Below, piece by piece: positions 3,681 through 21,573 of a DNA stretch of 64,000 nt. Each line of letters starts with the position of its first letter. Positions within the stretch are counted from its first letter, which is position 1. The translations under genes were made by a program, and so were the position numbers. The stretch is taken from contig CP075497.1 of the NCBI GenBank assembly GCA_021613535.1, forward strand, positions 12,214,001 through 12,278,000, in the 5' to 3' direction. Source of the stretch: Adineta vaga (Eukaryota; Animalia; Rotifera). The notes beneath the pieces are model-generated. The model was given only the letters and a program-made list of their open reading frames with translations. It searched no databases and had not been told where the DNA came from.

Positions 3681-4710
3681 TTATGGTGTTATTTGATTAA
3701 TGACAATTTTTTGTCTGTTTTTACATCGTTTCAAAGGATTTTTAAATAAAACATAAATAAATTGTCGACGATACCTTTCTGATACACACATATAAATATA
3801 AAATGGACTCTAAAATAATAATTTTTAAAAAAAAGATTAAAAATGAAATTTTTCTACATACTGAATAATAAATATAATAAAAAATTAACGTTACATGAGA
3901 TGCCAATTGAATTTGTGCTTTTAAAAGTGAATTATTAACATTTTCAGTTTGAAGTGAAATTATATTGGTAATAGCATATGGTAATAAAGTAAATAAACTA
4001 CAAAAAACTTGTGTTAAAACCATGAATGTTAATTGTTTATCTAATTCTCTTCGAACAAGTGGAGTTGTATAATGATTTAATTCTGTCAAATTTTTATAAG
4101 ACATTAATCCAAATAAACTTGTTATAATTAAGGGTAAAAAACCGTAAAGCACAAGAACAATAAAATAAGTTCGATATTCTAAATAAATTTTATTTGTCAT
4201 CACACATTGAATTTCACCTTTATTTGTTGTATTATGATAAAATAAAACTGCATATGGAATTCCATGTAAAATCCAAATAAAACTAAAAAATCCAACTAAA
4301 TAGTATGCGAATTTAATATTACAAAATCGTTGCAACTTTGGTTTTGAACATGTGGCACAATATTGATCAATTGTTGATAAACAAAAACACGTCATTGATA
4401 TCATTACACATATATGAGAAAAATATAAACGAAATTTACAATAGAATAATGATGTTTCAGTTCCATCTTGATCAATTATATAAGTAAGACTACGTGATAA
4501 TAAACCAGCAAATAATTGACCAAAATTAACAATTGACATAATTGTTAAATAAAATGCACAAGAATTTTCACGAAATGTTCGAAGACTAAGAAATACAACT
4601 GTATTGAAAATTCCACCTAAAACACCAACTATAAAAACGGTAATACCACCATAAATTGCGATTTGTTCTCCAGTATATTTCAATGATGCAATTAACAATT
4701 TTGATGACAT
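3681..4710 (-). CDS. Class A (rhodopsin-like) 7TM GPCR, copy 1, two exons
   Basis: ATG at 4710 (MSSKLL), seven hydrophobic segments, DQY at the DRY position. A GT-AG intron at about 3861-3810 restores the TM7 tail SPFYIYMCVSERYRRQ...ITP-stop at 3681. Confidence 0.88.
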
Positions 4711-5184
4711 TATCTTCTTTTTTGATTTATTTAACAAACTTCTTCTGTTAATTCAAGAACGTTAAATGACCTTTAAAAATAAAGATAGAGTAGAAAAAGA
4801 TTTTTTTGTTCTAGAGCATGATGAAGTTTTTCTAAAATTAACATAATAATAAGCTTGAGTAACAGATTTTTTAATTAAAAAAAATAAGACACATGACAAA
4901 AGTTTTGTTTGAAATTAAGCTTGCTTTTATTTTTTGATAATTCTCGAGATTTATTTGGTTATCCTCGAATGATAAATATTTAAACAAAAGGATAATGAGG
5001 TAAATAATCGAAGAATTTAAAAAAAAAACAACGAATGATATTCGTCAAAGAGAAATATTCAACATTATTTGATCAAGAGAACATTTGGATCAAATCATTC
5101 TTCCTATAAATCATTCGCTATATTGTTAATGGATTTTCAACGTTCTCGTACCAGATATCTATCCGATTCAGATATATTCATGAG

Positions 5185-7121: not shown

Positions 7122-8150
7122 TTATGGTGTTATTTGATTAATGAAAATTTTTTGTCTGTTTTTACATCGTTTCAAAGGATTTTTAAATAAAACATAAATA
7201 AATTGTCGACGATATCTTTCTGATACACACATATAAATATAAAATGGACTCTAAAATAATAATTTTTAAAAAAAGGTTAAAAATGAAATTTTCCTACATA
7301 CTGAATAATAAATATAATAAAGAATTAACGTTACATGAGATGCCAATTGAATTTGTGCTTTTAAAAGTAAATCATTCGTATTTTCAGTTTGAAGTGAAAT
7401 TATATTGGTAATAGCATATGGTATTAATATAAATAAATTACAGAAAACTTGTGTTAAAACCATGAATGTTAATTGTTTATCTAATTCTCTTCGAACAAGT
7501 GGAATTGTATAATGATTTAACTTTTTCAAATTTTTATAAGACATTAATCCAAATAAACTTGTTATAATTAAGGGTAAAAATGTATAAAGAATAAGAACAA
7601 TAAAATTTGCTCGATATCGTAAATAAATTGTATTTGTCATAACACATTTTGTTTCACCTTTACTTGTTTGAGTATGTTCATATAAAACTGCATATGGAAT
7701 TCCATGTAAAATCCAAATAATAGTAAATATAAATACTAAATATTGTGCGAGTTTTATATTACAAAATCGTTGTAACTTCGGTTTTGAACATGTTGCACAA
7801 TATTGATCAATTGTTGATAAACAAAAACACGTCATTGATATCATTACACATATATGAGAAAAATATAAACGAAATTTACAATAGAATAATGATGTATCAC
7901 TTCCATCATCACCAAGCATATAAGTAAAACAACGTGATAATAAACCAGCAAATAATTGACCAAAATTAACAATTGACATTATTGTTAAATAAAATGCACA
8001 AGAATTTTCACGAAATGTTCGAAGACTAAGAAATACAATTGTATTGAAAATTCCACCTAAAACACCAACTATAAAAACGGTAATACCACCATAAATTGCG
8101 ATTTGTTCTCCAGTATATTTCAATGATGCAATTAATAATTTTGATGACAT
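7122..8150 (-). CDS. Class A 7TM GPCR, copy 2 (tandem paralogue of 3681-4710)
   Basis: Same N-terminus, same intron position (about 7301-7251), near-identical last exon and 3' UTR. Confidence 0.88.
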
Positions 8151-8945
8151 TATTTTACCTTATTTGTTAATCCAGGAATGTTAAATGAGTCTTCAAAAAA
8201 AGAAATAGTACTTGTTAGAAAAGTAGATAAAATATAAAGTAACCTCCTGACTGAGCTCTGGATTTGATGGTTTTTCTTCTATAGCTTATAAAGCTTTTTA
8301 TATAATTACCATGATCATATACTTCTCTTTTTAATTAAAAAAAAAGTCACGCGAACAAAACTTTAATTATACTCTTTGATAGATCTTGACTTACCGTACA
8401 TTGTATTATTTTAGAAGAAGACTCATTTTTTTCTCTTATTGGATATTTAAGGATTCAACACATACTTATATATACACTAAAATGTTTTCAATATTGTATT
8501 AAAACTTTCTTGATCTGGATATATGTTCTTCACAAGAACAATTATTTCTAGCAGTTTCAATTAAGAATTCGGCATATTTTGAAACGCATAAAGTTTTACT
8601 GAGTAAACTTACATTAAAACATGTTTCAAACAGATGAGTAGATTATAATTGAGCACGAATATGATATTAAACAGAAAAAGAATAATTTCATTGGTAATAT
8701 GAACATATTCATTTAACCTACATCAACAATTATGATAGGTCGGAGCACTAATGGAAAAAAAGTAAATTGAATAATGGATAAGAAGATAAAATTGACAATC
8801 TTTATTTGTTTTCTTCAATATAAAATACTAAATTTCAACTATCAAGAGAGAAAATGCGATTTATGACTTTATAATATAAAATAAGTTTAAATCGAACTTT
8901 AGAGAAGAGTGTTACCATGATAAAAAGTTACCTAGATGTTCATAC

Positions 8946-9066
8946 TAGAGTCCTGCAAACCGGCCGAGCACCCGAAATCGGACCGGATCCGGACACGGGT
9001 TCGGATAAAATTTGTCGGGTCGATTCAGGTGCCGGGCGTAAAACTTTGTACCCGTGCAGGACTCTA
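8946..9066. mobile_element. 121 bp GC-rich MITE with 12 bp perfect TIRs (hAT-like)
   Basis: TAGAGTCCTGCA (8946-8957) and TGCAGGACTCTA (9055-9066); interior rich in CCGG/TCGG; no clear TSD. Confidence 0.8.
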
Positions 9067-9393
9067 CTTTATTTTGATGTTGGAAGGAAAAAGGAGAGAA
9101 AACCGAAGAGGAACGAACTGTTCACTGTGAAAGAAAACACAACAAAGAACGAAAACAAGAGAATGGAAGAAAGCAACTGTCCTTTTCGAAGGATCGTTCA
9201 TCTATTATAGAAGCCGATTCTGTCAGACATAAATTAAAATACGAAAAGTTGTTACAAAAAAGGGAAAATCCAATGTTTTTTATGTAAGCACAAAATAGAC
9301 AAATGGAGTTTAATTATAAATATAAAAAACGTTTTTTTTCTAGAATGTATCATATAAAAAATTACAAGTTTAAAAGCAACAAATGATGTATAC

Positions 9394-12033
9394 TTAACTA
9401 TTTTCAAATTTCTCTTTCATGATGGTGTCTAATATGTTTCCTACATCAATAATTATCTTAAGTGGTACACGAAAAAACTCTCGACCAGTATTAGTTCGAT
9501 GTTTTAGGAATAATTTATGCATCCATTGTTCGAACAATTTACAGTTATAACAAGTGAAAACTTTCTCAATGATAAAACGCGATGGAACACCTGTAGTGTA
9601 TAGCTGTCCGGCGCGTCTTTTTACACCAATAGTCGTATATCCGATTTTATAAACATACGGCATATCTTTATTACTCAACACATAAACTTCTCCATGACAC
9701 ACATAATTTGTTGAAATATTTGTATAGACTTTAGGAATAGGAGATAAAATCTCTTGATTATATGTGTGAATATTAGACAAAGTCCATTGTTCTGTAATCT
9801 GTAACTGGGCGATCGCAGGTAACGAATGATTCTGAAGTTCAGAATCTTCCTCTAATGACTGATCGATATTACTGACATCATTCTGAGTAAATTCTAAAGA
9901 TAAAGGAACTAAAACTAAAAGAACCTTTTCTTTGAATGTATTGTCTATTTTGCAACCTAAGGTCATACTATTTATTGTTGCATTAATATCGTTCGTAAAG
10001 TTACTAAAAGCGTTCGAAATCTGCTGAAAGTGTCGAGATAAACGTTTATATAACTTTTCTATAAAGTTTAAATCAATAGTATTCAGTTCTGTAATGAACT
10101 TTTGTAAACTAGCTAGATATTGTTCTTTTGTTCTATTCCCACTCACAGAATGAAGTCCATCATCAATCCATAATCTATTTTGAATTTCATCCCTCATTTG
10201 ATTATCCATCTGTTCTTTGACATGTATTTTAATAAAACGAAGCTGAGAATCAAAATTTTTTTTTAATTTCTTAATATGATATTCGATTTTCTTATCGTAT
10301 TGATCAACTGTATCATCCATACCTTGAACATTTTTCTCTCTTAACATTTTCTTTAACGATGGAAAGAACTTATTACGAAAAAGAGATAACAAATCACTTT
10401 TAAACACGGCATTTTTAAACAAAACTTCTGCTGTAGGAAGTTTGTCTATCTTGCTTACATCAATTATACTTGAACTTAATTCAGTCGATATCTCTACGTA
10501 ATCTCCGATCAAATTTTTTCTTAATGTTTGGTAATTGAATGTATCGTATTTGTGAGGAGACACATATATCTTTTTATTTATTATTGGCCAAAAATACTTC
10601 TCCCATAATTCTTTACTTCCTTCCTTAAAAAGTGACTCCGAACATTTCGTTTTAGTCTCAAATTCATCCAAACATTCTTTTGTAAGTGGACTCAACTCTT
10701 CATTACTAATAACCTCACATAACGGTTGAGATAATTCAACAGAAAGAAATTTTAACAGTATATTAATATTACTTATAATATCGTATCGCGTTTGATTCAA
10801 CTCTTCAGTAACAATATTGTTTAGTTCTTTATCAACGAATGCTTTCAAAATACTCTGATTGTCTTCTGACCATTTCTCGCCAGCGCACTTATTTTCAACA
10901 TAATAAACAGGCAAATCATCAATAAATCGAGCGATATATTCTTTCGGAAAATTATCTAATGGAATATCGCGACCTTTTTCTCTTAGTTTTTCTTTGTATT
11001 GTTCTTCAATACTTTCATTAGATACTTTTTGCTTTTTTGATTGTGCGGCTGTATTACGATGGGTTACAACTAAACTTATGTGTTTCAGTGAAGTCGATGA
11101 TCTTAAAAGGCTTTTCAGAAAGCTTGGTTGGAGGGGTGCACGTCCATCACCTCGTACCACATGTACCACTTGATCACAAATGGCAGTAGCCTCAACGGCA
11201 CGAATCGTCATCTCTTCGTAACCATCACCGTAACCAGGTATATCAAGTAGTATAAGATCATTACTCAATTTTGTAAATGGGCCTCGAATATATATTTTAT
11301 CAACGATCGGCCATAGTAGACCGTCTTTTGCCGCGAACTCATTTAATTGCTTCTTCAATGTGTTTAATTCATTACTTTCATAAAGTTCATAACCCTTACC
11401 CATTCTTTTCTGAACATGTTCTGGTAAATCGTCCAGTGGATCTTCATTCGTATCGTCACTATTAAAAAGATGTGCTTGTTTGTACATGAAAGCTTTCACG
11501 TCATCCGGTAGCTCATCTTCACTGTTGTTACTATGTAAATTTCTTGTCTCATATGCATTGTTAGATTCCAATTGCCATCGTTCTTTTGAAATAAAATATA
11601 CAAATAATTGATAGTATGATTCCTTCCAAGAAGATATGGCCGAAATTGAAGCTGTGCATGTATCAGCACCATCCGTCGGCAAAAGATCGTAATCAAGGAT
11701 CGAATTAATAAGCGAAGATTTACCACTACCTGATTCACCAATAAAACCAATTGTTTTTTGCTTTGTACTTTCACTTAAAAGCATAATTTGATTCAAAATT
11801 GGTTCCACTTTAGTAGACCAAATATTTTGTGTATTCAAATGATTAGCTTGTAAATTTCCTCCTTCAGTATCTGATACCAATTCAGACTTTTCATCAATTA
11901 CTATCTGTTTTCTTTCCTGGAACAAATCTTCCAGTGGTATTCGAATTTTGTCATGAACATATTGATTTAATAGGAATGATTGATTGAAGTCATGTATGTC
12001 GACAACAGCATTGGTAGTAATGTTATTAGTCAT
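9394..12033 (-). CDS. Dynamin-like (Dynamin_N / SLIP-GC-like) large GTPase fused to a C-terminal T5orf172/MUG113-type GIY-YIG nuclease domain
   Basis: 879 aa intronless ORF: G1 GESGSGKS, LLPT..CT (G2), LLDIPG (G3), VVTHRN (G4-like), helical middle region; C-terminus GEVYVLSN..P.VYKIGYTT..V.RR..QLYTTGVP..F...E..MH..F..HR....REFF. Confidence 0.88.
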   Translation of the reverse strand: MTNNITTNAVVDIHDFNQSFLLNQYVHDKIRIPLEDLFQERKQIVIDEKSELVSDTEGGNLQANHLNTQNIWSTKVEPILNQIMLLSESTKQKTIGFIGESGSGKSSLINSILDYDLLPTDGADTCTASISAISSWKESYYQLFVYFISKERWQLESNNAYETRNLHSNNSEDELPDDVKAFMYKQAHLFNSDDTNEDPLDDLPEHVQKRMGKGYELYESNELNTLKKQLNEFAAKDGLLWPIVDKIYIRGPFTKLSNDLILLDIPGYGDGYEEMTIRAVEATAICDQVVHVVRGDGRAPLQPSFLKSLLRSSTSLKHISLVVTHRNTAAQSKKQKVSNESIEEQYKEKLREKGRDIPLDNFPKEYIARFIDDLPVYYVENKCAGEKWSEDNQSILKAFVDKELNNIVTEELNQTRYDIISNINILLKFLSVELSQPLCEVISNEELSPLTKECLDEFETKTKCSESLFKEGSKELWEKYFWPIINKKIYVSPHKYDTFNYQTLRKNLIGDYVEISTELSSSIIDVSKIDKLPTAEVLFKNAVFKSDLLSLFRNKFFPSLKKMLREKNVQGMDDTVDQYDKKIEYHIKKLKKNFDSQLRFIKIHVKEQMDNQMRDEIQNRLWIDDGLHSVSGNRTKEQYLASLQKFITELNTIDLNFIEKLYKRLSRHFQQISNAFSNFTNDINATINSMTLGCKIDNTFKEKVLLVLVPLSLEFTQNDVSNIDQSLEEDSELQNHSLPAIAQLQITEQWTLSNIHTYNQEILSPIPKVYTNISTNYVCHGEVYVLSNKDMPYVYKIGYTTIGVKRRAGQLYTTGVPSRFIIEKVFTCYNCKLFEQWMHKLFLKHRTNTGREFFRVPLKIIIDVGNILDTIMKEKFENS

Positions 12034-12048
12034 AATAAATTTAATAAT

Positions 12049-12111
12049 CTACAAAAGATAACTGTTAGCAATACAAAGTAACTGCTGGGCGAATATGTTT
12101 TGATATTATAC
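12049..12111 (-). other. Probable 5' UTR intron of the GTPase-nuclease gene
   Basis: Minus strand reads GTATAA...GCTAAC (branch-like)...TCTTTTGTAG, ending about 15 nt before the ATG. Confidence 0.5.
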
Positions 12112-12991
12112 CGTTGTTCGAGCTCGATAAATAACAGTTTATCTTAATAATAATCTTGCTCTTATGCTACTGGTTTTATAACACAATGTTGTGAAAATAC
12201 AATATAATATCCTGCTGCCTTATAAAGCAACACGACAATGAAAAAGAAACATTTGTCTAGAAGATTAGAAAGGAAATTAAAAAAAAAACATTTTAGCAAA
12301 AAACATAATTATCTTTACTCTCAATGTATTTTCTTTTCTTCATGCTCATTACTAATAAAACATCTAACATTCGTTTTAATACAAAGCATATTAACTTTCT
12401 GAGGATCCCTGATGCATATGTGCATATCGACATTTATTTGACAAAAATAAAGCCACCTGTGTGCTTTGTTTTTGTTTCACGTGTTTTAACCTGTTTGCAA
12501 TTGTTGACACAAATATGCGTCAGCGTGAAGTCGTTTTTTATGTGCTATAACAAATAAGAAAAGAAAAGGTAACGTGGGTTTTTTTAAATTTAAAAACCGG
12601 GCCTGAAGAAGAGAAAAATCAACATAAAATAATATTTCTGTAAATGGCATACAACCTGTTCTATTTTAGATTTTAACATCCAGATACCACAAATAACAGT
12701 TTCTTTTATATGACAAAAAGACTACGTTGTTAGTTCTTACTGAAGAAAGAAAGAAAGAATCATTTCAGAAGACTAATTGCTGAGTTAATATGTACATATT
12801 CATTTGACCTAAATCCTCAACTATGATAGATCGTAGCGCTTGTGAAAAAAACGAAATGATTGGTGGTTTATCAAATATCAAATAAAAAATCTTGACTATT
12901 GTGACTCACATAACACCTCAAGAAAACATTTCAAAATTACAATTTAATTCTCTCTATAGATTAAATTTGCAGACATATTCACTATTCATCT

Positions 12992-14599
12992 ATGAACAAT
13001 TGTGATACGTATGTTCCTTCTCAAACAATTAGCTTATTTAATTATTATAATATTTATCGTATAGAAATGATATTGTTATAGAACAACAAGCTGAGAAACC
13101 CATTAAAAATGATATAATAGAAACAATCGAAAGCTTCGATCAATTAAATTTACGTGATTTACTTTTACAGGGCATTTATACTTATGGTTTTAAACATCCT
13201 TCGGAAGTTCAACAAAAATCTCTTCGATCGTGTGTTTCAGGTTCGTTTTTATATGAATTAAAAATCGAAATATTTATTCTTTTCATACAGGTGAGAATGT
13301 AATTATTCAATCAACATCAGGTACAGGCAAAACAGCAACATATATCATTGCAATTTTACAACAAATCAATTTGGATTGTAAAGATTGTCAAGCATTAATT
13401 CTAATGCCAACACGTGAATTAGCTCAAGCAGTATGATTTTATCTTCGATAAATTGTCAATTTGTTGTTCTCAGATTATAATTTAGATTCATTGTATGATA
13501 TTATCAATTGGTAAACGTATGGATGTGACATGTCATGCTTGTGTTGGTGGTGTTAGTATTCGTGAGGATATAAAATATCTTGAAAAAGGTGTACAAATTG
13601 TTGTTGGTACACCTGGTCGAATATCTGATATGTTTAGAAGATCAATACTTCGTAGGTGATTCTTTTTTATTATTGAATCGATGAAAATTTTCGTTTTATT
13701 CTTTGATTTTATACTATAGATAGTAATAAAATTAAAATATTTATATTAGATGATGCAGATGAAATACTTTCTCGTGGTTTTCATGAACAAATTTATGATA
13801 TATTGATGAAATTACCGACCGATTTTCAGAGTATTGTTCTATCAAACACAATGACAAATGAGTTACTCGAATTAACACAAAAATTTGTGATAAATCCTAA
13901 AACTATTTTGATCAAGAATGTAGAATTAAAGATGGACGGTTTAAATCAATATTATGTTGATATCGAACGTGAAGTAAATCATTCTAAAATGATTATCTAA
14001 TGTTTAAATATTCTTTTCATCTAGGAATGGAAATTAGAAACATTATATGAGTTATTCGATATGTTAACAACTCATCAAATAATCGTCTATTGCAATAAAT
14101 GTGAAAAAGTCGATTGGTTAACTGAAAAAGTCTGTGAACGTAATTACAAAGTATCTTCTCTAGTAAGTTTTATAATAACAAAATATTCCAAATAATCGAT
14201 TAGAATGTCTGACTTTTGTTTTGTTTCTAATAGCATCGTGAAATGGATATTACACAACGTAATGATGCAGTAGAAAAATTTCGAATTGGTTCTATTCAAA
14301 TCATGATAAGAACGGATAGAGCTGGTGTTGCAATGGATGTTTCACAAGTTAGTCTTGTTATTAATTATGATTTACAGATTTATATTGATCAATATTTAAA
14401 TCGGTAAGAATGAATGATTGTTGAGAGAAAATTAATTTTATGTTCTTGATTAAGTATTGGATATTGTGGAGAATTTCGTCGGAAAAAGACAATCATCAAT
14501 TTTATTGTTAAGGGTGAAGAACGAACTTGAAGTGCGATTGAAAATTTTTATAATACACGTATTGTACAATTACCAATAAATTTTGTGGATTCAATTTGA
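12992..14599 (+). CDS. Divergent eIF4A-like DEAD-box paralogue with degenerate motifs and a premature TGA (pseudoenzyme or young pseudogene)
   Basis: Spliced translation: GFKHPSEVQQ, STSGTGKT, PTRELA, GG, TPGR, DDAD (for DEAD), SNT (for SAT), NRIGYCGEFR (for HRIGRGGR); TGA at 14528-14530, eIF4A-like tail continues to TGA at 14597-14599. Confidence 0.85.
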
Positions 14600-15120: not shown

Positions 15121-17052
15121 ATGGTAACTGATATACAGAATGGTTTAATGACAGACGACGAAACAAATACAATTGTAAAAGATGACAATCAATGGCGACG
15201 ACGACGCATCGATATTCAAAAGATACAAAACACTATTCTCATATGGTTGGATAATAATATTGATAACAACAGTGAAGATTGTCAAAACATTATAATGGAA
15301 TTTCAACGTATTATAAATAATATTAATACATTTACGGATAGTGATCAATGCATCGATTTCATTCAAACAATTAAAGACAACAAAATATGTATAATCATGC
15401 CAGGATTTCTTGGCCAACAGATGATATCACGCGTACATAATATGTTCCAGGTAGATTCTATTTTTATCTTTTGTAACAACAACAAACGTCATGAATTATG
15501 GGCGAAAAATTGGCCCAAGATCAAGGGCGTGTTTACGAAGATCACACCTATTTGTGAAGCACTTAAACAAGTTGCTCAACAATGTGAGCAAAATGCTATG
15601 TCACTCACTTTTATGGCACCTAATCAGAAGCTAGATCAATTAGATCCATCGTTTATGTACACACAAATTCTCAAAGACATAATCATATGTATGGACTTTG
15701 AAGAAAAACATATGAATGAATATATTAGTTATTGTCGTGATATTTTTGCTGATAACAAAAATGAATTACTTAATGTAGAAAAACTAGAACATCAATATAG
15801 CAGCCAAACACCTATATGGTGGTATACTTATGAGTGTTTTTTGTATCCGATGCTTAATCGAGCACTACGACTAATGGATGGAGATATTATTATACGAATG
15901 GGTTTCTTTATTTGTGATCTTCAGCGACATATTAATGAACTACATCAAGAACAGTTCGGTAGTCAATATTCTCCTGCATCATTTACAGTTTATCGTGGTC
16001 AAGGTTTATCTAAGGCAGATTTCGAACAAATGTCCAAAACCAAAGGTGGATTAATTTCATTCAATAACTTTCTATCTACTAGCATGAAGCGTCAGGTCTC
16101 ATTTAGTTTTGCTCAACAAGCTGCTATGAATCCAGATCTCGTAGGAATTCTTTTCATTATGAACATTAATCCTGCTCAATCAACAACTCCATTTGCTTCC
16201 ATTTGCAACGTGAGTTACTTTGACACGGAAGATGAAGTCTTATTTTCGATGAATACTGTATTTCGTATTTGTGATATTAAACCAATGACTGAGAAGAATC
16301 GTCTTTTCGAAGTCACTCTGACACTTACGAGTGATGATGACGAAGACTTATCAGCACTCACTTATAGTATTCGAGATGAGATTCCATCGTGTGAAGGAGG
16401 ATGGAAGCCGTTAGCGTTTATACTAGAAAAAATGGGCCAATTCGACAAAGCTGAAGAAGTTTATCGATTTCTAATGAAAGAATCAACATATGAGGAAGGT
16501 AGAGGATCTTCGTATCATGCACTTGGAAGAATCAAATTTGGTCAAGGAAATTATCGAGAAGCAATAATGTTGTATGAGAAAGCAATCAATATGTATCAAG
16601 AGGCATTTTCTCCTACAAGTCTCAACTTATTAGATTTGTACAATAATATAGGTAAAGCATATGGAGCAATAGACGAAAATTCAGCAGCTCTCGTTTATTT
16701 TGAAAAAGCTATTAATATTCGACAACAATCACGATGTCCTGATCATCCTGATTTGGCTGATTCTTACAATAATATTGGTAATGTATATTTTAGAATGGGC
16801 AATTCTGCCGAAGCTCTATCATCACACGAAAAAGCTCTTGCTATTCGTCAACAATCACTTCCGTCTCATCATCCTGATTTAGCTATGTCTTATAATGATA
16901 CTGGTTTAGTATACGAAACTATGAAAAATTACTCAAAAGCTCATTCATACTTCGAACGTGCTACAGAAATTGGACAGCATTCACTACCATCGAATCATCC
17001 TATACTTCAAAATTACAAAATGAATCTTGAACGTATGAAAACGGAATTATAA
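15121..17052 (+). CDS. ADP-ribosyltransferase (R-S-E clade) plus TPR-repeat protein
   Basis: 643 aa intronless ORF; ART motifs VYRG, FLSTS, EDEVLF; kinesin-light-chain-like TPRs (HPDLA.SYNNIG.VY); N-terminal IWLD Rossmann/receiver-like segment. Confidence 0.9.
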   Translation: MVTDIQNGLMTDDETNTIVKDDNQWRRRRIDIQKIQNTILIWLDNNIDNNSEDCQNIIMEFQRIINNINTFTDSDQCIDFIQTIKDNKICIIMPGFLGQQMISRVHNMFQVDSIFIFCNNNKRHELWAKNWPKIKGVFTKITPICEALKQVAQQCEQNAMSLTFMAPNQKLDQLDPSFMYTQILKDIIICMDFEEKHMNEYISYCRDIFADNKNELLNVEKLEHQYSSQTPIWWYTYECFLYPMLNRALRLMDGDIIIRMGFFICDLQRHINELHQEQFGSQYSPASFTVYRGQGLSKADFEQMSKTKGGLISFNNFLSTSMKRQVSFSFAQQAAMNPDLVGILFIMNINPAQSTTPFASICNVSYFDTEDEVLFSMNTVFRICDIKPMTEKNRLFEVTLTLTSDDDEDLSALTYSIRDEIPSCEGGWKPLAFILEKMGQFDKAEEVYRFLMKESTYEEGRGSSYHALGRIKFGQGNYREAIMLYEKAINMYQEAFSPTSLNLLDLYNNIGKAYGAIDENSAALVYFEKAINIRQQSRCPDHPDLADSYNNIGNVYFRMGNSAEALSSHEKALAIRQQSLPSHHPDLAMSYNDTGLVYETMKNYSKAHSYFERATEIGQHSLPSNHPILQNYKMNLERMKTEL

Positions 17053-20517: not shown

Positions 20518-21573
20518 ATGAATGATCAAAAATGGACAACAATTACCAAAAAAAACAGAAGAAAAGCAACAAAACCTTCACCACCAACATCACAACCACC
20601 AGCAACAGCATCTGGAACACCATCAGCAACGTATGTAACATCAACACCAAAATCCAATGAAATTTCATCATACAATTCCGATGATTTATCATTATATAAT
20701 AAAATTGCAAAAAAAATTGAAGAAAATGAAAAAGAAATCGTTACTCGCTCTGGAAATTTATTAAATTATTACATAGAGCAAAATAAAGAACTACTGAAAC
20801 AACAAACCATACTCTTGCAACAGCATCAGCAACAAAAACAACCTAGTTCATTAGCAATAATTTTAGACAAAATCAATGTGTTAGAAAATCATCTAGACAA
20901 AATCGATATGATAGAAAATCATTTACACAAACTGCGATTAGCAAAAGTAAAAGAACTTGACATATAGCCAGGGAATCGAACACAAATTGAACAAGCACAA
21001 TTCAAAAACGACTTAATCATTAATTATCAATGTGGTAATCCGAACTACAACAATATAAAGTGCATGGTACTAAACAAATATTTTTCACGTAATGTTGTTC
21101 GAGCAAGTCATATTTGGAAGTATTGTACACATGGAGCTGGTTTAAATGAATTCGGATTACGTTACAGTGATTTAAATAATTATCGAAATGGATTATTAAT
21201 GTATACAACTATTGAAGAAGCATTCGATAATAAAGAATTATGTTTTATTTACAATCCATTTGAACGACAACTGGTGCTGAAGATATTACATAAAGGTGTT
21301 GATGGTATTACAGAAAATATTATATTATATCCAGATGATCAAAAGAAGTATAATAACTATATTAAATTCAAAGATATTGATGGGAAACCACTGAATTTAC
21401 CTGATGACATTTATCCATTTAGACGCTTATTGAATTGGCATGCGCGATGCGCGCATGAATATGGAAAACTCAAACACTGGCTTTCAGAAACAGAAAGTTT
21501 TGATGATTATTTCGATTTATCCGATTTGGTATCATTACCGGGCGATGATATTTATGAAGAACCACTGGATTAA
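20518..21573 (+). pseudogene. Coiled-coil plus HNH_2-type (Crinkler-like) endonuclease gene interrupted by one in-frame TAG
   Basis: ORFs 20518-20967 and 21064-21573 share a frame and the gap is open (ELDI*PGNRTQIEQAQFKNDLIINYQC...KCMVL); motifs CMVL, ASHIW, NGLLM, EEAFD, PFRRLLNWHAR. Confidence 0.75.

Follow-up and report, generated by a model that had tools for sequence, protein, structure and literature searches.

A predicted dynamin-like GTPase domain joined to a T5orf172-type GIY-YIG nuclease domain in an expressed, trans-spliced gene of the bdelloid rotifer Adineta vaga

We analyzed a stretch of 64,000 nucleotides from the genome of the bdelloid rotifer Adineta vaga (assembly GCA_021613535.1, contig CP075497.1, positions 12,214,001 to 12,278,000; C6:12214001-12278000 in our contig numbering), which is called the window below. 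On its minus strand, at 9394-12033, it carries an intact gene for a protein of 879 amino acids (aa). The predicted protein consists of a dynamin-superfamily G domain, a long helical stalk and, at the C-terminus, a GIY-YIG nuclease domain of the T5orf172 type. The gene is transcribed and its mRNA receives a spliced leader. As judged from sequence comparison, the fusion defines an undescribed eukaryotic family, present in bdelloids, centramoebid amoebae and metagenomes. What is new is the recognition of this family and its architecture, since the sequences are already public under automatic names.

The explanation that we prefer as a whole is an expressed, trans-spliced gene of an undescribed family, the product of which would be a nucleotide-switched nuclease with its most likely role in genetic conflict. 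We give this explanation an about even chance. A conserved and expressed fusion of a GTPase like those of bacterial dynamin-like proteins (BDLPs) with a GIY-YIG domain, present in two distant eukaryotic groups, is a directly testable candidate for a nucleotide-switched nuclease in eukaryotes. Such a protein could bear on how bdelloids police or process DNA.

The gene and its product

The first-pass annotation of this DNA, a reading of the letters alone, had reported an intact, intronless open reading frame (ORF) of 879 aa. The ORF listing of the window agrees with this: the frame at 9394-12033 (minus strand) starts with ATG, has no internal stop and codes for 879 aa plus stop. The features of the gene are as follows.

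9394..12033, minus strand: complete coding sequence of 879 aa and a stop codon (TAA, 9394-9396); zero joints inside the ORF across the four sequencing runs described below
11770..12033, minus strand: N-terminal region, aa 1-88; two long helices (18-52, 66-88) in the AlphaFold model; the SynDLP/BDLP alignments span nearly the whole model
10879..11769, minus strand: predicted GTPase (G) domain, aa 89-385, from the Dynamin_N (95-340) and LeoBC (86-399) matches and the model; helical insert of ~90 aa between switch I and G3
11716..11739, minus strand: G1 / P-loop GESGSGKS, aa 99-106; G99, G102, G104 and K105 nearly invariant in 18 family members
11233..11244, minus strand: G3 DIPG, aa 264-267; D264, P266 and G267 invariant in the same 18 members
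11059..11070, minus strand: G4 position, aa 322-325, with THRN replacing N/TKxD; from the sequence and the family alignment
9844..10878, minus strand: all-helical stalk (neck and trunk), aa 386-730; helices 390-729 with mostly 80-90 in the predicted local distance difference test (pLDDT), and Foldseek matches
9709..9843, minus strand: linker, aa 731-775; 733-748 disordered (pLDDT <50), then the conserved motif W-T-L-S-N-I-H...L-S-P-I-P (750-770)
9397..9708, minus strand: T5orf172-type GIY-YIG nuclease domain, aa 776-879, with Y784, K796, G798, R807 (9613-9615), E835 (9529-9531), H839 and REFF at 851-854
9079..9393, minus strand: 3' untranslated region (UTR) as far as the RNA-like contigs extend; X8 and X11 contigs end at 9079 and 9176; includes a 32-bp allelic indel at 9320-9351
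12049..12050, minus strand: AG of the spliced-leader trans-splice acceptor (ttttgtAG, then ATTATT); exon start at 12048 and 5' UTR of 15 nt (12034-12048)

The genome consists of 100,824,805 bases in 6 contigs, and the contig of the gene is 13.9 Mb long. The GC content of the gene (~0.32) is that of its flanks, and the window is uniformly AT-rich (GC 0.25-0.34). The genomic-DNA run X6 covers the gene and its flanks (8600-13400 examined) at an even depth of ~115-175x. Contamination or misassembly of the locus was ruled out by the composition, the genome context, the even X6 coverage and the spliced-leader copies described below. The neighbours of the gene are ordinary host genes.

Transcription and spliced-leader trans-splicing

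Expression was analyzed by comparing positions 8600-13400 with the assembled contigs, not the raw reads, of four public runs (X1, X6, X8 and X11). With X1, X8 and X11, which come from three different studies, coverage around the gene was found only at 9079-12050, with a depth of 2-16. Nothing was found at 8600-9080 or at 12142-12946, and the signal returns in the next gene. In this upstream neighbour, X11 possesses GT..AG joints at 13008/13065 and 13237/13288 (minus strand; introns of 56 and 50 nt). The run records do not give the type of the libraries, and the three runs were taken as RNA because of the gene-limited coverage and the GT..AG joints in the neighbouring gene. The RNA-like contigs diverge from the reference at ~2% of positions and so represent another haplotype or strain.

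The first-pass annotation had warned that reads might fail to span the domain junction. Single contigs (X1 record 1; X11 record 6, 9352-10075) run from the stalk through the linker into the nuclease, and the junction is continuous. The sole joint near the gene was a 32-bp skip at 9319/9352 with AT..TC ends. The DNA run X6 shows the skip too, so that this indel of the 3' UTR is allelic and not an intron. Thus, the gene is transcribed in Adineta vaga, where the RNA nature of the contigs is what we infer from the coverage and the joints. The position on a 13.9-Mb contig and the RNA-like contigs from three studies bear out the earlier suggestion that the gene is domesticated in the host and expressed.

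The same annotation had expected an intron in the 5' UTR. This expectation has to be given up: no cis intron is present, and positions 12050-12049 carry the AG of a spliced-leader acceptor. Past 12050, one contig of X11 continues with nine loose letters, CTTGGTAAG on the plus strand, the reverse complement of which is CTTACCAAG (chance about 4e-6). When the AG at 12050-12049 is added, CTTACCAAG equals the Rotifera leader GGCTTATTACAACTTACCAAGAG at its 3' end. The sequence of this leader is given in Table 1 of PMC3795323. In the genome, the acceptor reads ttttgtAG followed by ATTATTAAATTTATTATG. These nine letters of one contig place the trans-splice site of the GTPase-nuclease mRNA 15 nt ahead of the start codon. 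Exact copies of the leader's 3' part followed by GT number 44 in the genome, against 0 for the reversed control. The spliced-leader gene-like copies are clustered, for example at C5:9884354-9925971 and C2:8684671-8691981, and often form head-to-head pairs ~165 bp apart.

The G domain and the stalk

Pfam Dynamin_N matched residues 95-340 with an E-value of 1.6e-10 (41.7 bits; cut-off 27), and a partial match of PADLOC LeoBC covered residues 86-399 (E 2.9e-8). With the Dynamin_N score above the cut-off, GESGSGKS at 99-106 and DIPG at 264-267 correspond to the G1-G3 motifs of the dynamin/SLIP-GC type that had been read from the sequence at first. The sequence search of the PDB returned only P-loop noise to ABC transporters, and the NCBIfam scan returned sub-threshold P-loop matches only.

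The G4 position departs from N/TKxD. As the first-pass annotation had stated and as the sequence reads directly, it is THRN, in which His replaces Lys and Asn replaces Asp. THRN is common to the query and its two close orthologs, the three closest sequences of the family. Elsewhere in the family the position varies (SKAD, ARLR, SHLK, THGR, TKVK and others), and K..D is kept in one of the 18 members (P0005, SKAD). It is the Asp of N/TKxD that recognises guanine, and the change of Asp to Asn shifts Ras-like GTPases towards xanthine nucleotides. With no aspartate at G4, the protein may not be strictly specific for guanine. This natural loss raises the question of which nucleotide the protein uses.

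The full-length AlphaFold model was made with a 60-sequence alignment. Its mean pLDDT was 82.6 and its predicted template modelling score 0.63, and low confidence was limited to residues 1-15 and 733-748. The long helical stalk of the first-pass annotation is found in the model as the helices at 390-729. The stalk is the fastest-evolving structured part of the protein. In the Foldseek search of the PDB with the full model, SynDLP (7zw6) was the first match (E 5.5e-12, 875 columns). The next were Campylobacter DLP1/2 (5oxf, 5owv), Nostoc BDLP (2j69, 2j68) and IniA (6j73), and thereafter Drp1, mitofusins, Fzo1, OPA1/Mgm1, dynamin and Mx. Model helices 18-88 and 390-729 lie on both sides of the G domain, and the alignments to SynDLP, DLP1/2 and BDLP have 720-875 columns. 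As in bacterial dynamin-like proteins, the helices 18-52 and 66-88 are probably part of the bundle. From this order of the Foldseek matches, residues 1-730 are, in the model, a BDLP/mitofusin-like module composed of the G domain and a helical neck and trunk.

In comparison with BDLPs and mitofusins (SynDLP 7zw6, Campylobacter DLP1/2 5oxf, BDLP 2j69, IniA 6j73, MFN1/2 and Fzo1), the rotifer protein is alike in its large G domain with P-loop and DxxG and in the N- and C-terminal helices that form the neck and trunk; the Foldseek E-values range from 5.5e-12 to 1e-6 over 450-875 aligned columns. In contrast, the rotifer protein possesses THRN instead of N/TKxD and a C-terminal nuclease, which the BDLPs and mitofusins lack. 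Furthermore, BDLPs and mitofusins remodel membranes, whereas nothing in the rotifer protein points to membranes. It has no hydrophobic paddle or transmembrane segment, the maximum of a 19-residue Kyte-Doolittle window, a crude test, being 1.23.

By sequence, the nearest relatives of the G domain are SLIP-GC/NUGGC-like GTPases (Dynamin_N plus DUF7605). SLIP-GC-like proteins of ~750 aa from fungi (Mycena, Funneliformis), amoebae and metagenomes match at E-values of 1e-19 to 1e-11, and a feature match in the ESM Atlas is named 'Nuclear GTPase SLIP-GC-like'. The rotifer protein differs from them in two respects. At E-values up to 1 it gave no match to DUF7605 (PF24564), a domain that was found in the unfused relative P0031 (E 8.5e-15). 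The unfused SLIP-GC-like proteins have no nuclease, and the fusion family forms a clade separate from them, with a support of 99% in the Shimodaira-Hasegawa-like approximate likelihood ratio test (SH-aLRT).

The linker and the nuclease domain

The linker motif W-T-L-S-N-I-H...L-S-P-I-P (750-770) precedes the nuclease in all members, the amoebal ones included, and I755 and H756 are invariant in alignment A3. The core of the following domain reads GEVYVLSN..YKIGYT..R807..E835..H839..REFF. Pfam T5orf172 matched residues 783-864 (E 1.9e-12, 48 bits; cut-off 20), and Pfam MUG113 matched residues 795-864 (E 2.6e-11, 44.4 bits; cut-off 22.3). PADLOC PDC-S57, a candidate defence family, matched residues 781-868 (E 1.2e-21); this match lies on the nuclease domain and covers part of the profile only (positions 6-93 of 212).

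When the tail (750-879) was modelled alone, the pLDDT was 93.8. VIA-align of the tail against 48,161 representative chains gave At-HIGLE 7wme (Z 6.5, root-mean-square deviation (rmsd) 2.5 over 85 residues) and Slx1 (6seh, Z 6.2; 7cq2, Z 6.0). The next row had a Z of 3.9, and I-TevI and the UvrC N-terminal domain were lower. Foldseek on the isolated domain was not significant, with the GIY-YIG protein 1zg2 as the best row (E 0.38) and 1ywl and Slx1 among the top rows. By these models, the fold of the tail is GIY-YIG. The C-terminal T5orf172/MUG113 GIY-YIG domain of the first-pass annotation is thus upheld by Pfam scores above the cut-offs and by the HIGLE and Slx1 matches. The matches to SLX1 and HIGLE (rmsd 2.5-3.4 over 85-90 residues) are structural: the identity is 12-16%, and no sequence-level match exists. 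SLX1 further differs in its RING/PHD finger and its SLX4 partner, and it has no GTPase.

N788, G798, R807, E835 and F854 are invariant in 37 aligned nuclease domains. The T5orf172 nuclease Gp88/Odn of phage ICP1 possesses the corresponding Arg and Glu, and its DNA cutting depends on the Glu (PMC8263062; bioRxiv 10.1101/2023.03.23.533998). By analogy with Gp88/Odn, Arg807 and Glu835 are of the catalytic type, and the domain looks catalytically competent. Phage and bacterial T5orf172 proteins are 38-46% identical to the rotifer protein over residues 777-869, and the rotifer domain keeps the Arg and Glu that matter in Gp88. The phage and bacterial members are short or have DNA-binding or helicase partners, whereas the rotifer domain sits at the C-terminus of a eukaryotic GTPase of 770 aa.

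The fusion family and its distribution

An exhaustive HMMER search of 1.84 billion representative proteins gave 3632 proteins at E up to 1e-3, and the best 150 were scanned again with three parts of the query. Among these 150, 18 proteins of 731-1054 aa carry the nuclease as a tail behind the G domain, in the order of the query. They are the query, two close orthologs and 15 further clusters at 50% identity. When added cluster members were included in a scan with domain HMMs, 22 proteins, counting the query, had both domains. It was the HMMER search that revealed the family; word-indexed protein searches with the G domain alone and the tail alone gave almost no extra members.

The taxonomic range rests on few named members. 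These are Adineta steineri CAF1322250.1 and Rotaria magnacalcarata CAF2135503.1 among bdelloids, the amoeba Balamuthia mandrillaris (KAL6059208.1, automatically named "Nuclear GTPase SLIP-GC") and the amoeba Luapelamoeba hula (EukProt transcriptome). The remaining members are from metagenomes or Logan assemblies. P0002 and P0003, the closest relatives, share 56% and 55% of their residues with the query along the whole protein; both come from AT-rich metagenomic contigs (29-31% GC) no longer than 46 kb. The relative P0005 has an N-terminal OTU cysteine protease before the GTPase and T5orf172, and P0059 has ankyrin repeats and the GTPase with no nuclease detected. In the Luapelamoeba member P0026 the tail is degenerate, without E835 and REFF in the alignment and without a Pfam T5orf172 match.

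Separate phylogenies of the two domains, which the first-pass annotation had called for, were made. In the tree of 119 G domains, all 22 fusion proteins fall inside one clade of 39 rows (99% SH-aLRT), the other 17 rows of which are mostly short fragments. Outside it are 80 unfused proteins of ~750 aa, including those of Mycena and Funneliformis. The bdelloid sequences are in two separate subclades. The nuclease-domain tree has too few columns to resolve origins; in it, 17 of 22 fusion tails fall in one set without a bacterial sequence (95% support).

Viral and prokaryotic collections were searched by a few short peptide patterns. In phages (86 records) and bacteria (58 loci), the matches are confined to residues ~750-879; the identity is 29-46%, and the ORFs have 125-722 aa. 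At none of the 58 prokaryotic loci was a dynamin-type G domain found within 4 kb, with a G-domain pattern that is very specific and could have missed bacterial fusions. The IMG/VR search with a 6-sequence alignment gave zero viral relatives, a weak result in which only two peptide patterns were scanned.

In ~8.4 million full texts, T5orf172 and dynamin never occur together in one publication. The literature search found GIY-YIG, dynamin and effector together only in a survey of prokaryotic defence systems, and the bdelloid papers with GIY-YIG concern Penelope-like retroelements, which belong to a different GIY-YIG branch. The first-pass annotation had regarded the fusion as probably undescribed in an animal. 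This stands as far as publications are concerned; the fusion is, however, not peculiar to this animal, and its members are public under automatic names.

Conservation, selection and copy number

In the 18 family members, W241, P242, G251, G781 and N788 are invariant together with the three G3 residues listed above. K796, G798, R807, E835, H839 and R846 are nearly invariant, as are the four G1 residues.

Within the species, 28 of 59 variants are listed, 27 in codons and 1 in the stop; they divide into 16 synonymous and 12 non-synonymous changes, with a pN/pS of 0.19. All five listed variants in nuclease codons 776-866 are synonymous, and 8 of the 12 listed non-synonymous variants fall in residues 681-750. 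Against the coding sequence of P0003 (55% identical), the non-synonymous divergence (dN) is 0.32 and the synonymous divergence (dS) is 1.24, which is saturated, so that the ratio is about 0.26. By part, dN/dS is 0.15 in the G domain, 0.30 in the stalk, 0.56 in the linker and 0.24 in the nuclease. Purifying selection thus acts on both domains, in a protein that evolves fast. An absence of transcription and a dN/dS near 1 would have spoken against the first-pass annotation; RNA-like contigs are present, and neither ratio is near 1.

The family-profile search of the genome detected one intact gene and one decayed copy at C5:4207606-4209761 (loci L002-L005 and L015-L016). The decayed C5 paralog is 53% identical and has several TGA, TAG and TAA stops. 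A fragment of it is deposited as UJR19952.1, "hypothetical protein I4U23_023084 [Adineta vaga]". A seven-transmembrane (7TM) receptor gene (7tm_1) adjoins both the intact copy and the C5 paralog in the same relative position and orientation. From this shared neighbour, we take the two loci as a duplicated block in which one copy was lost. The block is consistent with the old genome duplication of bdelloids.

Possible function and alternative explanations

The switching-on of the nuclease by GTP binding or oligomerisation, which the first-pass annotation had proposed, and the immune role are both putative. Binding and hydrolysis of a nucleoside triphosphate (NTP) by the G domain would drive dimerisation or a rearrangement of the stalk, as in other dynamin-superfamily proteins. 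The NTPase cycle would then license the nuclease or position it on DNA, perhaps via the conserved linker motif 'LsNIH..LsPlP', and the most likely role of the protein would be in genetic conflict, to destroy viral, transposon or other foreign DNA. Such a role is favoured by the fast evolution, the patchy range, the decay of the paralog next to one intact copy, the accessory OTU and ankyrin domains of relatives, and the fact that both domain families recur in defence contexts, to which the PADLOC matches to PDC-S57 and LeoBC also point. Proteins involved in conflict commonly show such shuffling of domains.

Immune dynamin-superfamily GTPases (Mx, GBPs, Eleos, DynA) are thought to assemble on membranes or viral structures, and to our knowledge none of them carries its own nuclease. 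Prokaryotic defence proteins with an NTPase and a nuclease have a like logic, a P-loop NTPase with a nuclease effector. Eleos (LeoA/LeoBC) is a bacterial anti-phage system of two adjacent dynamin-like genes without a nuclease, whereas the rotifer gene encodes one eukaryotic polypeptide. The rotifer gene does not belong to Eleos: it is a single eukaryotic gene, its match to LeoBC is partial only, and a second family member is absent nearby. Eukaryotic Eleos homologs have been discussed as immune genes, without nuclease fusions (bioRxiv 10.1101/2022.12.12.520048).

A bolder form of the conflict explanation is that the family is a new class of eukaryotic innate-immune effectors. The dynamin-superfamily NTPase would sense or assemble on foreign DNA (giant or other DNA viruses, horizontally acquired DNA, transposons) and cut it with its own GIY-YIG nuclease, as a counterpart of the bacterial NTPase-nuclease defence. 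It would be shared by bdelloids and amoebae that host giant viruses, possibly via transfer between eukaryotes. We regard this form as tentative, with a chance well short of even.

Several observations weigh against a nucleotide-switched nuclease of genetic conflict. With its non-canonical G4, the protein may be no GTPase in the strict sense. The prediction of a G-domain homodimer (two copies of residues 60-400 with GTP) returned no verdict and is given no weight. Expression is read from assembled contigs of low depth (4-10) whose RNA status is deduced, and the leader from 9 letters of one contig. A defence island at the locus is not shown: the neighbouring gene for an ADP-ribosyltransferase (ART) with TPR repeats is from a huge family, and this neighbourhood is no evidence of function. 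In structure, the nuclease is closest to SLX1 and HIGLE, two nucleases of DNA repair, a finding that fits a repair role equally well. Finally, a T5orf172 domain can be domesticated as a DNA binder; in a report on the ICP1/PLE satellite, a domesticated endonuclease is described as tuning phage gene expression (bioRxiv 10.1101/2020.11.28.402263).

In the repair role suggested by these matches, the protein would be a SLIP-GC-like GTPase of the nucleus. It would deliver a structure-specific GIY-YIG nuclease to DNA that is damaged or branched and would serve the extensive repair of double-strand breaks in bdelloids after desiccation or irradiation. Bdelloids are known for the uptake of foreign genes and for massive DNA breakage and repair, and mammalian SLIP-GC/NUGGC is linked to the limiting of AID-dependent mutation. 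Holliday-junction and flap nucleases lead the structural matches of the tail by the Z scores given above, the protein has no transmembrane or paddle-like segment, relatives of the G domain are annotated 'Nuclear GTPase SLIP-GC', and ORFs with BRCT and HNH domains lie 7-9 kb away. However, core repair factors are usually slow-evolving and widely conserved, whereas the rotifer gene is fast-evolving (bdelloid orthologs 55% identical, dN 0.32), its paralog is decayed and its range is very patchy. The DUF7605 of SLIP-GC-type relatives was not detected, and the structural Z scores are moderate. In our judgement, a repair or recombination factor is less likely than the conflict role but the likeliest of the alternatives.

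We consider it improbable that the tail is a DNA-binding or targeting module without cleavage, in a DNA-tethered dynamin-like mechano-GTPase that remodels, for example, chromatin or nucleoid-like structures. InterPro and UniRef do call the domain 'Bacteriophage T5 Orf172 DNA-binding', and the satellite endonuclease mentioned above and the degenerate tail of P0026 are in line with such a module. Yet R807 and E835 are among the residues invariant in the 37 domains, and residues of this type are tied to catalysis in Gp88/Odn. Catalytic positions that are kept across members only 20-25% identical are hard to explain without catalysis. Still less credit is due to selfish or mobile-element cargo, that is, a homing-endonuclease-like or virus- or transposon-borne gene that is not domesticated, and we hold this to be very improbable. 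T5orf172 genes are frequent as phage homing endonucleases and are reported from giant viruses and polinton-like viruses. The family is found in amoebae that host giant viruses, the gene is intronless, and its 3' end is closely followed by a GC-rich palindrome. T5orf172-type homing endonucleases are, however, encoded by mobile, often multi-copy genes located in phage genomes, introns or inteins, whereas the rotifer genome has a single intact copy and a decayed paralog, the latter in a duplicated block of host genes that shares the 7TM neighbour. IMG/VR gave no match by the patterns scanned, and the phage and bacterial matches are to the 90-aa nuclease only, and their short ORFs have no G domain closer than 4 kb. 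The composition of the gene equals that of its flanks, its mRNA is trans-spliced, and it is under purifying selection.

Neighbouring genes and a hairpin near the 3' end

The following neighbours were found in the window.

3742-4737 and 7266-8150: two rhodopsin-type 7TM receptor ORFs, downstream of the GTPase-nuclease gene
15121-17052, plus strand: ADP-ribosyltransferase (ADPrib_exo_Tox/ART) + TPR gene, 643 aa
18955-19422, plus strand: BRCT-domain ORF (E 5.8e-11)
21064-21573, plus strand: HNH_2 endonuclease ORF (E 1e-5)

The BRCT and HNH_2 ORFs are both 7-9 kb upstream of the GTPase-nuclease gene.

ART-TPR genes also adjoin the ortholog in loci L008 and L009, and a conserved pair of an ART-TPR gene and the GTPase-nuclease gene was considered. 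The ART-TPR family has more than 60 near-full-length copies in the genome and 1452 first-look candidates. The copy in the window is only the ~48th best match, and its orientation differs from that in L008 and L009. Since the family is huge, the copy is not orthologous and the orientation differs, the pair was rejected as orthologous synteny.

A GC-rich hairpin or palindrome of ~115 nt, AGTCCTGCA...TGCAGGACT, is located at 8950-9068 of the window, in a genome of 30% GC. It gave zero matches in Rfam and has a single partial copy elsewhere in the genome (C5:1006801). Its minimum free energy is -57.7 kcal/mol (z -5.5 against shuffles), and it sits just past the end of the RNA-like contigs of the gene (9079). 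The hairpin could be a remnant of a miniature inverted-repeat transposable element, a terminator-like structure or a small RNA.

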